Shown piece after piece: positions 2,240 through 63,880 of a stretch of 64,000 nucleotides of DNA. How positions within the stretch are numbered: position 1 is the first letter of the stretch; the number at the start of each line of letters is the position of its first letter. The notes under the pieces were generated by a model. The model was not told the origin of the DNA. It did no database searches and saw only the letters and a list, made by a program, of their open reading frames with translations. Origin of the DNA: Octopus bimaculoides (taxonomy: Eukaryota); the NCBI RefSeq assembly GCF_001194135.2, contig NC_068990.1:87888521-87952520 (forward strand), in the 5' to 3' direction. Made by a program: the position numbers and the translations under genes.

Positions 2240-2426
2240 TAGATGAACCTTAATTGGGCAAAGGTATCTCAATCCCAGCCATGACCACCCATCTTCCTTT
2301 TGGGGACTGTCTTATTCAACATATCTTCCCTTTCTAAAAAGAACGGTAGGGTACGATTTGAAAATTTTGGCTGCTATTTCTAGCATATCAATCGATCACA
2401 TGTGAGACTTCTTCATTTGGCTCGTG
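2240..2426 (-). mobile_element. Family E repeat (HDV-ribozyme-like head), degenerate copy
   Basis: Shares CCAGCCATGACC...GGTAGGGTRYGATTTG...GGCTGCTATTTCTAGCA blocks with the copies at 6.7, 7.3, 10.7, 15.0, 35.1 and 63.7 kb. Confidence 0.7.
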
Positions 2427-3906
2427 TTAGCTAAGATGTATATATATTCAATGTATGGATGTATGGTTATATTATTGTGTATGCATGCATTTGTGCGTAT
2501 GTATTCGTATATAAAAACGTATGTTATGTGCATTATGTACCGAGTATATTAGTCTCAGTAGGAGGGTGCAACCCATAGCTTTTTCTTGGCCTCATGTTCC
2601 ATGGGATTGAAACAACAATTAAATAGATTTGATTTGATTAATGTTTAAATTGAACTTTTTTTATGTTTCTATATATTTTTTTTTGTTCTCCAAACGGTTT
2701 CAGTCATTGAACTGAGGCCATGCTGTAGCACTCTCCGTAAAGGTTTTATTGATTATATCGCCTCTTCCTCTGTTTTCTGTACATTTTAGCTGGGAACCTA
2801 TTTTATTGATCTCTACATATCAAATTGCTAAGTTGTGTTTTTGTCATTAAGGCATGCAGTTTAAGACACCGGTTAACACTGATAAACGTAAATATAGACA
2901 CACACACACGTCTGTGTGTATATATATGTATATGTGCATGTACATATGTGTAAACATAAGTATGTATATATATATATGTATATGTACATACGTGTATACA
3001 TAAGCATGCATGTATATGCATATGTGTATTTGTATGCATGTGTATATGTATGTATATATGTATGTGTATGTATATATGCATTATGTACATATATATATAT
3101 ATATATATATATATNNNNNNNNNNNNNNNNNNNNNNNNNNNNNNNNNNNNNNNNNNNNNNNNNNNNNNNNNNNNNNNNNNNNNNNNNNNNNNNNNNNNNN
3201 NNNNNNNNNNNNNNNNNNNNNNNNNNNNNNNNNNNNNNNNNNNNNNNNNNNNNNNNNNNNNNNNNNNNNNNNNNNNNNNNNNNNNNNNNNNNNNNNNNNN
3301 NNNNNNNNNNNNNNNNNNNNNNNNNNNNNNNNNNNNNNNNNNNNNNNNNNNNNNNNNNNNNNNNNNNNNNNNNNNNNNNNNNNNNNNNNNNNNNNNNNNN
3401 NNNNNNNNNNNNNNNNNNNNNNNNNNNNNNNNNNNNNNNNNNNNNNNNNATATATATATATATATATATATATATATATATATTTGTGTGCGCGTATCTG
3501 TGTGTGCATGTACATACATGTACAATTATCATTTCAATGTGCAGAGTATATGAGGGGTAGATTCAGCTGGTAGATCAGTCCAGGGCCCAGACCACAACAC
3601 CGAGGGGAGGGGAAAAGGGTGGGGCTATGAATACCTGACAGGTCTCTCCCTGAAATACCATTTCAGGTCCCTTGAATTTCCTGGAGACATGCCTGTCCAA
3701 GAAATCTGAAACCGGTCTGGTTCTGGTATACATAATTTCTCTCAGGGGCCCTGTTCTTGCTACAGTAGAGGTCTTTTGTCCAAGATGCTCTGCTGTAGGG
3801 TTGCACCCAGAATGGGTATATTTGCAAAGGAAACTTAACAACACAGATCTCTCTCTCTCTCTCTCTTTCTCTTTCACACACACAAACACACACATGCATG
3901 CACATA

Positions 3907-4060
3907 TATGGGTGTGTAGTTAAGAAGTTGGCTTCTTATCCACTTGGTTTCAGGTTCAGACTCACTCAGCGGCACCTTGAGTAAGTGGTTTCCATACATA
4001 GTCTTAGGCTGACCAAAGCCGTATGAACAGATTTGGTATATAGAAACTGAAAGAAGCTCA
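3907..4060 (+). mobile_element. SINE family A (tRNA head plus CORE-like domain), 5' half
   Basis: A/B-box-like head GTGTGTAGTTAAG...GGTTTCAGGTTCAG, then GGCACCTTGAGTAAGTG and GACCAAAGCC...GAAACTGAAAGAAGC, as in other copies. Confidence 0.75.
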
Positions 4061-4179
4061 TCATACATATCATATCATATGGGCAACAGACATTAAATGA
4101 TGATGATAATGATATATATATATATATATGGGTGTATGTAGTTGTGTCCCTTTGTCTTGGCATCCCATAATAGATGTAA

Positions 4180-4370
4180 ACAAGTATCCCTGTCATATAG
4201 GCAGTGTCATTCCCAATCTTCTTGGCAATGGAGAAATATTACTTTGCTAGGAAACAAGTAAGGGTTGGTAACAAGAAGGGTCTCTGGCCACAGAAAATCT
4301 TCCTCAATGAACTCCATCTGACCCATGCAAATATGGAAAACTGGATGTCAAAAATAATGATGATGAAGTT
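4180..4370 (+). mobile_element. (GAT)n-tailed retroelement 3' end (family C variant)
   Basis: GGGTTGGTAACAAGAAGGG...ACCCATGCAAATATGGAAAACTGGATGTCAAAA followed by GATGATGATG; inverted relatives at 4730-4960 and 40550-40740. Confidence 0.65.
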
Positions 4371-60598: not shown

Positions 60599-60778
60599 AT
60601 AACATGTACATATATGTGTATATATAACATGTACATATATGTGTATATATAACATGTACATATATGTGTATATATAACATGTACATATATGTGTATATAT
60701 AACATGTACATATATGTGTATATATAACATGTACATATATGTGTATATATAACATGTATATATATGTGTATATATAAC
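60599..60778. repeat. 25-bp minisatellite AACATGTACATATATGTGTATATAT, about 7 copies, continuing across gap
   Basis: Exact 25-bp periodicity from 60601; a related unit occurs at 60300-60334. Confidence 0.92.
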
Positions 60779-60844
60779 CAACCTTCTCAGCCCAAAACAG
60801 AGGTAATTAGTAATAACCATCATCATTCATAGTAATAATAATTG

Positions 60845-61060
60845 CTTCAAATTTTGGCTCCAGGCCAGCACTTTTAGGGAGAGATGCTTCATTGATTACG
60901 TTGACCTTAGTATTTGACTAATACTTTATTTTATCAACTTCAAAAAGATGAAAAGCAGAACTGACCTCAGCAGAATTTGAACTCAGAATGTAAAGAGCCT
61001 GAACCAATACTGAAAAGCAGTTTTTCCAATGCACTAACTATTCTGCCAGTTTACTGCCTT
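60845..61060 (-). mobile_element. SINE family B
   Basis: AAAGATGAAAAGCAGAACTGACCTCAGCAGAATTTGAACTCAGAATGTAAAG...TTCTGCCAGTTTACTGCC. Confidence 0.8.
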
Positions 61061-63709
61061 GATATCAATAATAATAAATGTTCAATAAACTGATGACATA
61101 ATATCAAATGATATAACATGATATGACATAATATTACATAGCATAATATAAATTGAACACACCATAAAAGCAGATGGACAATCAAACTGTATATATGCTT
61201 GTATGTAATATGGACACATCATCATCATCGTCACACATATGTATATATATAGAGGTGTGTTTGAGTTTACACCCACATGCGCATGCGCACACGCACATAC
61301 ACACATATAAATTCAAATAAGGTTTATTAAATACCAGCAAGATATATCCTTGATTTATTGAAATTATCTCTGCTTCCAGAAAAGATAGAATCAGTTATTT
61401 GGTTGTAGTTGGAACCAACACCAAATGAGAAAGAGAGACAATCTCGAGAATCAAGAATTCACCAACATTAAGAAGCTGTTAAAGAAAAAAACAGTTTGAT
61501 TAACTGGAGACAAGAGGACAGCTGTAGATGTGTGTATTTGCTTTAATAGGCATTATCAGCACAGCAGTTGCCCTAATTAATTTCCAGTAGTATGAGATAA
61601 TTAGACATAAACATAAAGAAAAGAAAATACTACTACTACTACTACTATTCACACACACATACACATTGCCACTACTAAAGTCTTACAACTATTACTATAA
61701 CCCAGCAAGCCATCAGAAGGAGACATACAACCAGTACCGTTTTAATCTTGTAATGAAAATATGAGAACTTCTAAAACTGATATCATGAAACAGTTAATTT
61801 ATTAAAAATTTTTTTTTCCTTTCTCTTACTGCATGACTAAACTAGCTAAGACAACTGAAGCCAGTTGCACATTTTGATAAAACTGTAAATATTTCTTTTT
61901 GTTTATGATAAAATTCTCAAAACATTTTCTTTTTCAATATAAATTTACTTATGTGAAACCTCTTTTATACACACACACAGACACACAGACACACACACAT
62001 ACACATATTTATATATATGAGATGCTCTAATATTCTACCAGGCCATGGCTCTGATTTTGCTATCTCCCAAAAGGATGAAAGGTAAATTTGACAAATCAAT
62101 TAGTTAGTTAATTAATTAATTAGTTAATTAAAAATAAAACTGATGTGAACTGATACCACCGTTTTTTACTAGTAGAATGATGCTCCTAAACTACAAGAGT
62201 ATTTGTTTCACTTGATGATTTCACATTAAAAACTTTGCAAAATTTATACAAAAAAAATTTTAGTTTATATTGGATTTTAATTTGAATTCTTAATTTCAAA
62301 TTTAGATCATTTTACTTTCATCAATTTAAAATTTCAAATGGATAAATAACTAAAAACATTTTTGTTTGATAAAAGAAAAAGGAAAAGAATTTATAATTTA
62401 TTTTAGTTTTGCACCAGTTCGGTTACATTAGTTCTTTAGCTATTGTTCAAACCAGATCAATCCTGATCAGAGATATCACAGCTGTGTCTATTTCATCTAG
62501 TGAATCTAGTTCTACATTATTTAATGTGGCTTTCTATTTTTTAGATAGCAGTGTGTGATCGATTTTGAGGTGGAGAGACTTTTAGCTGCTACAGCATTGA
62601 GTAAGAGCATAAAACATAAAGCAGAGGTGGAAGCCCATATTCTGACAAGGACACTTCTCAAAACATTTTATACTGAAAAAACTATTATAAATGTAATTAT
62701 TCACAAAGACAATAAACAAAATTTAAAGACAGGCAACACTTTGAAATTAGCATCCTCGCCATAACATTAAAAATGTTTTATTTCGTTTATTTATTTATTT
62801 TAATTTCAGATTTGTGTCTTTTATGCACAAATGTAATTACTCTAAACAAATAATTACAAACATAGATAAAGAAATATAAACAGCTATTTCTAAAATTTAT
62901 AATTTGTTGATAAGATAAAGCTTTGAATAAAATTATATCAACAAAAATATTTCTGCATAATGATTTTCTCTGAAACATTGTACTTCTGTCAGAAGGATGT
63001 ACACAGCCCTTCAGAAAGCTACTGATTCTCCATCACTAATAGATAGGTTCTTTCAAATTCACATCTTTATTATTCCAATCATTATTTTGCACCTCTGTGC
63101 AAGACATTTAAATCTGCTAACTCCAAAAACTACAAAAAAAATTAAAGAAAATTATAATCCAATGAAGCAAACTTTGATTTGTGTCAACATAAAACAGTTG
63201 ATAATATTTCTATGTTTATGTTTCTGTGTCTAGATTGTCTTTATTTTCTTTATTTTTTCTCTAGTAATGTTTCTCAACATTTAGTCATTTGTGCATCATA
63301 TTTCAACAGTTCATTACCTTGTATGTACTGTCTGTTGTTGTTTATTTAAAATACTGTCTGGCAATTTATTGAAAACATTTTAATGTAATTTTAATTGTCT
63401 TCAGGTAATATAACAAAACAAGGTGTTAAAATATAATTTCTCTGAGCAATTATTTTCCAGTGAGTATGAAATGAAGATAAATATACATAATCGCTAATAT
63501 TATTTCTCATCATGATAATACAGGGGAGCCAAAAGCTGGACTTCCTTAAGTAATATTTATGCTTTATGGCATCAAATTTTCAGACACATACCAAAATACA
63601 TCCATTTTCTTACATTTGTTAACCAGAAGAAATGTTTAACCCAATATTAACCAAAAGTGTAATGAATGAAAACAAAATGCGATCTGTCACAATGTTGAAG
63701 TTCAGTATT

Positions 63710-63880
63710 GGATTGTCGTTGATGTTACTGTTTTAACTATAGATCAACTCTTATCTATCAGACTTATGGCTAGAGGCACTCCAGTATGGTCTTCTGTCTT
63801 TTGCTTTTATGGAAAGATATGATTTGAGGGGGATTTGGCACCTTTTTCTAGTAAGTTGAGTGACCTTTATAGCAACACTT
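63710..63880 (-). mobile_element. Family E copy
   Basis: GATATGATTTGAGGGGGATTTGGCACCTTTTTCTAGTAAGTTGAGTGACC. Confidence 0.6.

Follow-up and report, generated by a model that had tools for sequence, protein, structure and literature searches.

A (CAA)n-tailed repeat family in Octopus bimaculoides is probably an ancient SINE-like retroposon whose ribozyme likeness is at chance level

Among the described short retroposons closest to the one reported here, the LP-SINEs (SINE, short interspersed nuclear element) of gastropods and bivalves have no small-RNA head, end in terminal simple repeats that in some cases follow an ACTAAA-type hexamer, and carry heads defined by homology to ~70 bp (base pairs) of the 5' untranslated regions (UTRs) of Nimb/RTE long interspersed nuclear elements (LINEs); their transcription by RNA polymerase (Pol) II has been proposed and is unproven (Matetovici et al. 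2016, PMC4758252). In UnaSINE1/UnaL2 (cited in PMC4758252), a short element has a conserved 3' region with simple repeats where the reverse transcriptase of its partner LINE primes, and both the partner and the shared 3' stem-loop are documented. Non-autonomous elements headed by a hepatitis delta virus (HDV)-like ribozyme are also already known, namely NARTc (PMC3185411) and the R2 short internally deleted elements (SIDEs; PMC3414825); in these systems (NARTc/L1Tc Pr77 and the R2 SIDEs) the 5' end of a short derivative is set by a ribozyme that is shared with a LINE, forms a full double pseudoknot and has demonstrated cleavage activity (PMC3185411, PMC3383444, PMC3414825). Octopus genomes are dominated by tRNA-Core and tRNA-Deu SINEs (PMC8967140), and the annotation of O. 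vulgaris holds 893 'unclassified SINE' families among its recently active repeat families (PMC13282606). Here we analyse a stretch of 64,000 nucleotides (nt) of the O. bimaculoides genome (NC_068990.1, positions 87,888,521 to 87,952,520; hereafter the window) that contains a family of short repeats ending in (CAA)n, which had been predicted from the letters of the window to be a ribozyme-capped non-autonomous retroelement with a head folded like the HDV and CPEB3 ribozymes.

We conclude, with a probability of about 0.8, that this family is an ancient and now inactive, short non-autonomous retroposon of the non-long-terminal-repeat type, SINE-like and without a tRNA-type Pol III head, and that its likeness to a ribozyme is at chance level. 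Of the element originally predicted, the shortness, the (CAA)n tail, the 5'-truncated members and the lack of a tRNA-type Pol III head are retained here, while the ribozyme cap is given up. About a dozen copies had been proposed, and when the 12 listed places were aligned with MAFFT and the alignment was turned into a profile for iterated nhmmer searches over the window, all 12 fell into one repeat family and the searches converged on 15 pieces with E values from 7e-10 to 8e-43. The total in the window is 14-16 copies, which occupy ~4.5% of its non-N sequence. Beyond the 12 listed there are 4-5 further pieces: 935-1054 (+) and 1060-1277 (+), what is probably a head at 746-785, and two short 3' fragments, ~10648-10734 (-) and 15218-15250 (-). 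The strings quoted in the original prediction are present as written (35278-35213 (-), 2426-2357 (-), the hairpin at 6861-6876, CUGUUA-GAAA-UAACAG with CGAA at 7262-7281, and the tail GGGCTAAACAACAAC), and a recognisable (CAA)n or (CAN)n run is found on the copy's own strand at the end of ~8-9 of 14 copies. None of the copies overlaps or touches an N gap (the closest gap lies 50 nt from copy 2228-2450, and the remaining copies are at least 148 nt away), so that continuity across gaps is irrelevant to the finding.

The unit is ~215-240 nt long, with ~215 nt in the profile and 11-25 nt further 5'. It starts near AGAWGTACCAAGC..ACGAGCC and, in element orientation, runs from AGAWGTACCAAGC..ACGAGCCAACAAAAGAAG through ~10 variable nt, GGTCGCTCGACC, CTGCTAGAAATAGCAG, CCAAATCTCTCTCAAATCACACCCTGCCATCTT, an A-rich stretch, GGACACATTGAATAATGTAGTCC and GATGGGATGGTCACAGCTGGAATGCCTTTGATCATAGGTCTGCTTGATTAGGGCTGACCTAGGGCTAAA to (CAA)n; its end reads ...GGGCTGACCTAGGGCTAAA and then (CAA)n, the last part being ...GGGCTAAA(CAA)n. 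One GNRA-type hairpin, CUGCUA-GAAA-UAGCAG, is conserved at about position 56-71, and RCTAAA stands directly before (CAA)n (ACTAAA in copies 15001, 52004 and 2232, GCTAAA in the consensus). There is no coding frame in the unit, with stops in all frames, and nowhere in the sense consensus do four or more T stand in a row. Several copies are 5'-truncated, with profile starts at 72, 78 and 103, and truncated members include those at 935-1054, 36950-37078 and 10648-10734; nine copies start within ~20 nt of a common point, and copy 35070-35278 is exactly flanked by a target-site duplication, AC(C/T)TTTGGCA, with a match of 9/10. The short non-coding unit, the (CAA)n tails, the 5' truncations and the one duplication are hallmarks of a retroposon with a LINE-type 3' end. 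A miniature inverted-repeat or other DNA transposon is not supported by the consensus ends, at which no terminal inverted repeats were found (score 6 against a shuffle mean of 6.2). The full consensus folds somewhat better than its shuffles (z=-2.6), and the head alone does not (z=-0.76); RNAalifold predicted no pairs on the heads or on the 3' regions, a null that is uninformative on the structure of the master copy because the copies are too decayed. The body also holds an inverted repeat, CCATCTT…AAGATGG, around a GGACACATT…AATGTAGTCC hairpin (consensus ~96-103 / ~147-154, e.g. 10799-10886). A few copies seem to pair in this CCAUCUU/AAGAUGG stem via changed bases; the alignment there is too gappy to count, and a covariation count was dropped because indels put the MAFFT alignment out of register.

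We propose that the enzyme of a partner LINE, recognising the 3' region together with the (CAA)n tail, would have reverse-transcribed an RNA copy of the unit at a nick in the chromosome (target-primed reverse transcription). Such a route would explain why the tails vary, why some copies are 5'-truncated and why there is one clear target-site duplication. The tail repeat may have paired with the nicked target, in which case the (CAA)n tails of older copies would be favoured landing sites and head-to-tail pairs would result. Four same-orientation junctions at which a copy lies within a few nt of another's tail are seen in the window (935-1054 then 1050-1282; 39009-39200 then 38795-39008; 15218-15250 then 14998-15217; 10737-11049 then 10648-10734), whereas by our own arithmetic ~0.05 would be expected if 16 pieces were scattered randomly over 59 kb. 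At these junctions the tails vary in length and composition, and what lies upstream can be as little as a 33-nt stub or as much as a nearly full copy; repeated insertion into (CAA)n tails already present agrees with this better than the amplification of a tandem unit.

The copies differ from their consensus by 31.5% on average (Jukes-Cantor distance 0.41) and from one another by ~48% (~52% identity). In O. vulgaris repeats, a Jukes-Cantor distance of 0.2 has been calibrated to about 56 million years (PMC13282606), and extrapolation from this value gives a rough family age of the order of 100 million years. The observed/expected ratio of CpG is 0.25 in the whole window and 0.68 in its first 2 kb, beside a channel exon; this is a promoter-proximal, CpG-retaining zone in which old repeat copies keep their CpGs. 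Copy 1050-1282 in this zone keeps ACG..GTCGCTCGACC..CCCGACC, at sites that are TG or CA in the remaining copies, so that a CpG-corrected ancestor can be written. The consensus head was built from ~10 heads.

An HDV-like ribozyme has a P1 stem of 6-7 bp at the cleavage site, normally with a G1-U wobble, an outer pseudoknot stem P2, a P3 of 3 bp with an L3 loop of ~7-8 nt, a two-pair P1.1, a P4, and a J4/2 joining segment that holds the catalytic C. The permissive descriptor that we used (stems: 5-7 bp for P1, at least 4 bp for P2, 3 bp for P3, any shape for P4; loop and joining segments: 5-9 nt for L3, 1-3 nt for J1/4, 3-7 nt including a C for J4/2; no P1.1 demanded) found its positive control, the human CPEB3 ribozyme, and gave no parse in the CpG-corrected consensus head or in 10 of 11 copies. 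The remaining one, copy 2232, parses only when one P1 mismatch is allowed, and 14 of 60 of its shuffles then parse too. In Rfam, no HDV-like, CPEB3, hammerhead, twister or other ribozyme match reached the gathering score in the whole window, and none was obtained at E<=10 on either strand of five individual decayed copies, the searches having been made with individual copies. The relaxed search of the whole window (E<=10) also returned ~200 'microRNA' matches (mir-297, mir-3149, mir-466 and others; e.g. 2922-2992, 57810-57880, 60268-60335), all of them artefacts on TG/TA-type microsatellites and far below gathering scores.

Stem by stem, the best P1 in the CpG-corrected consensus is CGAGC/GCUCG, 5 bp long, starting with C and lacking a G1-U wobble, and individual copies keep 3-5 of the 5 pairs; the original prediction had itself named a P1 of 5-6 bp and no clear G1-U wobble among its weak points. 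With P1, P1' and P4 fixed and J4/2 set to 2-8 nt, the best P2 has 3 bp, while 37% of shuffles reach at least 4 bp; the sole alternative with 4 bp, AAGA/UCUU, is found 29 nt downstream of P4. The consensus P3 would be GUC/GGU, with two wobbles, in a region of uncertain consensus where the P3 columns pair in 50-59% of cells, and the consensus L3 offers no P1.1 partner for the J1/4 dinucleotide AC or AU. The predicted P4-like hairpin and the CGAA after it were confirmed, in that the hairpin is perfect at 6861-6876 (as CUGCUA-GAUA-UAGCAG) and CUGCUA-GAAA-UAGCAG is followed by CCAA, UCAA or CGAA (CNAA) in most copies; this is a short, non-specific feature. In the human CPEB3 ribozyme the order P1'-J1/4-P4-J4/2 resembles the family's order of stem, 2 nt, hairpin and CNAA; however, CPEB3 passes the descriptor with a P1 of 6-7 bp, a P2 of 8 bp and a P3 of GCG/CGC, and the family consensus passes on none of the three.

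The covariation that had been proposed fared no better. Pairing on the proposed structure occurs in 64% of cells against 60% in column shuffles (22/500 as high), four other measures are reached by 25-47 of 500 shuffles, and the pair counts are within the range that the tool reports for unconstrained sequences. Changes in P1 sit on two CpG dinucleotides, where most combinations of TG and CA decay still pair via U-A or G-U, and the decay set seen includes paired outcomes and an unpaired one (copy 63732, CA with CA). The P1 'covariation' is therefore the pattern expected of independent CpG decay, a source that had been suspected for part of it from the start. In nine copies the flank at -1..-25 of the proposed cleavage site is more alike than in any of 400 control sets, and AGA(A)T..ACCA.. 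recurs in four copies, 11-17 nt before the proposed P1; the flanks at -26 to -50 are not more alike than controls, and beyond -25 they are unrelated and less alike than random controls. The likeness of the head to an HDV-like ribozyme is thus a partial, chance-level match made of a 5-bp stem, one hairpin and a CNAA motif, and a ribozyme fold is not supported, rather than disproved.

Small-RNA heads were sought by scoring box A (TRGCNNAGTGG) and box B (GGTTCRANNCC) as the best pair at a spacing of 25-65 nt, with 500 shuffles. The best match in the family has 9 mismatches, worse than all 500 shuffles, whereas two tRNA-derived control families in the same window are detected, the Deu-type consensus with 4 mismatches (18/500 shuffles as good) and a CORE-type copy with 3 (1/500). 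The earlier statement that the family has no A/B-box head therefore holds under a calibrated test. ARAGORN found no match in the family either; it also misses the tRNA-derived control SINEs, even as consensus, so its silence was given no weight. Alignments to nine cellular tRNAs gave z<=1.8, and there is no similarity to the head of the Deu-type SINE; by eye, TCGCTCGACCTGGTAGA faintly recalls a D-arm and TCAAATC a box B, and the tRNA alignments are not significant against shuffles. An origin from 5S rRNA was rejected in the same way, in that GATGGGATGGTCACAGCTGGAATACC resembles the 3' part of 5S by eye and the alignment with human 5S is no better than shuffles. For 7SL, TGTAGTCCTAG, TGATCATAG and CCTAGGGCTAAACAACA follow one another in 7SL order, and the alignment is not significant (261/1000 shuffles as good). 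Box A/B scoring and local alignments thus detected no tRNA, 5S or 7SL head in the family.

Several observations weigh against an inactive retroposon with a chance-level ribozyme likeness. The 5' end of copy 35070-35278 as defined by its duplication precedes the proposed P1 by 1 nt, which taken by itself matches the prediction of the ribozyme model, although a slightly 5'-truncated insertion would explain it too. The ancestor also has a perfect CGAGC/GCUCG and, 2 nt on, a perfect 6-bp GAAA hairpin with CNAA, the same order as in P1'-J1/4-P4-J4/2. On neutral, 30%-diverged copies the power of covariance models and of covariation tests is low, and such models also missed the tRNA heads of the control SINEs; covariation would not be expected even from a structured master copy, because the copies have drifted neutrally for long. 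With 14-16 heavily decayed copies the consensus is uncertain, chiefly at head positions ~34-44 (the would-be P3/L3). A convincing target-site duplication is seen in one copy, the others having presumably decayed, and the window holds no partner LINE with the family's head or tail, in that head-only and tail-only profiles match only the known copies. As to transcription, the lack of a T run of four or more would allow Pol III, and the RCTAAA before the tail recalls the LP-SINEs, for which Pol II has been proposed.

How the copies spread and where their heads came from allow other answers. A head that trims a Pol II read-through transcript by self-cleavage at the base of P1 would draw on the ancestral stem-hairpin order, the parse of copy 2232 with one mismatch, the end of copy 35070-35278, the missing box A/B and the existence of ribozyme-headed relatives such as NARTc and the R2 SIDEs; we nevertheless regard it as very unlikely, given that P2 does not exceed 3 bp, P1.1 is missing, P1 is short and starts with C, the descriptor fails although it finds CPEB3, Rfam is silent at E<=10, the pair statistics lie inside the control range with the 'compensatory' changes on CpG sites, and similarity between copies continues upstream of the would-be cleavage site (400 of 400 control sets exceeded). 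Spread as tandem units, in the manner of Penelope-associated or hammerhead retrozymes or of a satellite, instead of by single LINE-driven insertions would produce copy-after-copy junctions like the four seen. Such junctions are, however, irregular here: the tails differ, and the upstream partner may be a 33-nt fragment, half a copy or one with a deletion, a pattern consistent with insertions one after another into older tails. The majority of copies stand alone, no regular arrays were found, and neither strand of the five copies searched in Rfam has a hammerhead or other ribozyme match, and we consider tandem spread extremely improbable. The copies might also be the 5'-truncated 3' ends of a LINE and not a separate short element, a reading to which the LINE-like 3' region, its simple-repeat tail and the truncated members lend themselves; the common start point of nine copies, the unrelated flanks beyond -25 and the lack of coding potential speak against it, and we give it very little credence.

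Two further possibilities concern the head of a SINE-like retroposon, and each is an unlikely but serious one. The head could be a module from a LINE 5' UTR, the family being then LP-SINE-like or an internally deleted LINE derivative with a Pol II or LINE-type internal promoter and no need of a ribozyme. The lack of box A/B and of any 5S, 7SL or small nuclear RNA match would agree with this, as would the RCTAAA before (CAA)n and the precedent of mollusc SINEs whose ~70-bp head is common to Nimb/RTE LINE 5' ends, some with ACTAAA before the terminal repeats (PMC4758252). Yet the window contains no LINE with the family's head or tail, and the lack of a T run equally fits Pol III; homology to LP-SINE and LINE heads would be conjectural, and we consider this origin unlikely. 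With a similar probability, the family could be a classical Pol III SINE with a small-RNA-derived head too decayed or too derived to be recognised from 14 old copies. Nearly all known SINEs are of this kind, tRNA-derived SINEs dominate octopus genomes (PMC8967140), hundreds of O. vulgaris families carry the label 'unclassified SINE' (PMC13282606), the sense consensus has no T4 terminator, and there is the faint likeness to a D-arm and a box B; the box A/B test that both control families pass, the tRNA alignments, the comparison with the Deu-type head and the 5S and 7SL alignments all argue the other way, and we find it doubtful. A bolder version, in which the head is a genuine non-Pol III module (a LINE 5' UTR promoter or processing element, possibly a minimal or degenerate HDV-like ribozyme in the master copy) and the family the first cephalopod SINE of LP type, Pol II-transcribed and preferring (CAA)n tails, appears distinctly improbable. 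There is a small chance that a proper consensus may link the family head to a LINE 5' module.

Set beside the described systems, the SINE-like family of the window agrees with LP-SINEs in its mollusc host, the lack of a small-RNA head, the terminal simple repeats with a poly(A)-signal-like hexamer of ACTAAA type before them, and a Pol II transcription that can be proposed and is unproven; LP-SINE heads are defined by homology to LINE 5' UTRs, a homology that would be conjectural for the family. To our knowledge, no LP-SINE is on record from cephalopods. NARTc/L1Tc Pr77 and the R2 SIDEs correspond to the ribozyme-capped element originally predicted, but they possess the full double pseudoknot, whereas the family has no P2 or P1.1, has a 5-bp P1 without a G-U wobble, and includes several copies that extend upstream. 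Like UnaSINE1 it is short and has a conserved 3' region followed by simple repeats; unlike UnaSINE1/UnaL2, it has no partner in the window and no 3' structure in RNAalifold. The octopus tRNA-CORE (OR2-like) and tRNA-Deu SINEs are similar in size and interspersed in the same intron-like region, but they have a clear box A and box B and no detectable sequence in common with the family, and in this window they are represented by younger copies.

Octopus genomes consist in large part of SINEs, of which many families are unclassified, so another family that looks promoter-less is no surprise. A tempting ribozyme reading of a repeat head fails under a CpG-corrected consensus with shuffled and positive controls, and in a CpG-depleted genome independent CpG decay can mimic compensatory changes in stems. 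What remains is modestly useful: an abundant-looking family that, unlike the other SINEs here, has no tRNA-type promoter and tends to land in its own older tails. If a genome-wide consensus were to tie its head to a LINE 5' UTR, the little-studied LINE-promoter SINEs would extend from snails and bivalves to cephalopods.

Individual copies illustrate the range of preservation. At the left end of the window, a probable head piece at 746-785 (+) (profile positions 52-91; head-only nhmmer profile E=0.049, and reading of the sequence) would belong to the copy that ends at 1054, whose 3' half at 935-1054 (+) (profile positions 103-213, E=2e-17) has the tail CTCTAAATAA and, by reading of the junction, is directly followed by the next copy. 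The two parts are split by a CpG-rich insert of ~130 nt at 786-934 (+), unrelated to the family, with an inverted repeat GGGGCTCGG…CCCGAGGGCCC. The following full-length copy, 1050-1282 (+) (E=3e-27), lies in the CpG-retaining zone by the channel exon, begins AGATACCACCA and has the tail CAACAACAACAG. Copy 2228-2437 (-) (E=4e-28) is full-length with its tail lost, was one of the two parsed as HDV-like, and has the hairpin AUGCUA-GAAA-UAGCAG at 2371-2386; the top-scoring copy, 6687-6925 (-) (E=8e-43), contains, besides an internal poly-A expansion, the perfect 6861-6876 hairpin. In copy 7212-7431 (+) (nhmmer match 7248-7427, E=1e-29) the 5' end is diverged or lost, and the hairpin CUGUUA-GAAA-UAACAG at 7262-7277 precedes CGAA. 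Copy 10737-11049 (-) is full-length (nhmmer matches 10737-10886 and 10920-11030), with an internal duplication or insert of ~45-95 nt that places profile positions 78-123 twice in the alignment; directly after its tail, by reading of the junction, comes the 5'-truncated and internally deleted copy 10648-10734 (-), matched by the tail-only profile at 10656-10682.

Copy 14998-15217 (-) (E=7e-40), full-length with 6 nt missing from the hairpin, begins AGAATTAAGAG right after the CAACAAC tail of a short 3' fragment of an older copy (…GGTCCTGAGATTAATCAACAACAG) at 15218-15250 (-), which was read from the sequence and is too short for a significant profile match; the copy appears to be inserted into the tail of the fragment. 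The second copy parsed originally, 35070-35278 (-) (E=8e-38), is near-full-length, and its candidate target-site duplication stands at 35279-35288 and 35060-35069. The 5'-truncated copy 36950-37078 (-) (profile positions 72-215, E=7e-10) has the tail CAGAAACAAC and abuts a tRNA-Deu-type SINE. Full-length copy 38795-39008 (-) (E=1e-26), whose own tail is (CAA)7, begins AGAATCACCAAGC immediately behind the tail, CAGCAGCAACAACAG, of copy 39009-39200 (-) (nhmmer match 39012-39180, E=2e-18), in which an internal deletion removes the hairpin. Three copies remain towards the right end: 52004-52214 (-) (E=6e-30), with a strongly diverged head and the tail CAACAACAG; 62431-62615 (-) (E=2e-25), lacking the first ~20 profile positions and with a decayed tail; and 63732-63905 (-) (E=2e-24), which has a mid-body deletion and begins AGATGTACCAAATG with no copy upstream.

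The G+C content of the window is 35%, microsatellites are numerous, and there are 17 N gaps. At 4-354 (+) lies exon 1 of a TASK-type two-pore potassium channel (K2P); an identical product is encoded on four Logan contigs (runs SRR11869384, -390, -391 and -394), which only re-cover window positions ~1-1840, and the closest named relatives are molluscan, at ~75% identity. No second channel exon was seen in the window, so most of it may be intron 1. Twelve of the 15 family pieces are on the minus strand, antisense to the channel gene (two-sided binomial p~0.035, a rough estimate); an antisense bias is typical of intronic retroelements. No family member was found in the loci around the closest relatives of the K2P exon, exact-pattern scans of a metagenome collection for additional family copies gave 0 matches, and protein searches aimed at spurious open reading frames (ORFs) on host contigs, with the translated family consensus and translated Deu-SINE baits, gave no candidates.

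The tRNA-derived Deu-type SINE, in which the box B reads GAGTTCAAATTC and the body (…GACTTTGCCTTTCATCC…GGGGTCGATAAATTAAGTACCAG…) is Deu-like, has at least seven copies in the window, at 14238-14276 (-), 17114-17152 (+), 21744-21782 (-), 34410-34448 (+), 37194-37232 (+), 53512-53550 (-) and ~22885-23100 (+), some of them nearly identical to the consensus, which makes this family much younger than the (CAA)n family. A CORE-type (OR2-like) tRNA-derived SINE (…GGTTCAATCCCACTGTG…GGGGAAGTGTCTTCTACTATAGCCTC…) is present at 42722-42880 (+) and ~12618 (-), one of the copies running into the gap at 42910. We take both types to be octopus SINEs. Other retroelement remnants include a decayed C-terminal region of a LINE reverse transcriptase with several stops (…FHYLGDLQNSGGGCSGSIVARERTRKIEFSELLHLLVTKGFSLRVKDRLCDACV…) at ~33250-34140 (-), whose tail, (ATT)n(AGT)n(GGT)n, stands at 33125-33195; this remnant was rejected as the partner LINE, its end not being (CAA)n. 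C-terminal pieces of a retroelement ORF (…KYKDLEIEITRMWNLKTETIPIIVGALGIIKK…ALLGTAHILRKTL) lie at 27371-27589 (-), continuing past the gap 28071-28234, and at 41127-41360 (+); the reading frame of the first stays open as far as the N gap, so that this piece looks fairly young. An ORF fragment at 8902-9204 (-) resembles, by reading of its sequence, a Tc1/mariner transposase (…HTKFPPAVMILGVMSNDGD…) and is a candidate for such an element.

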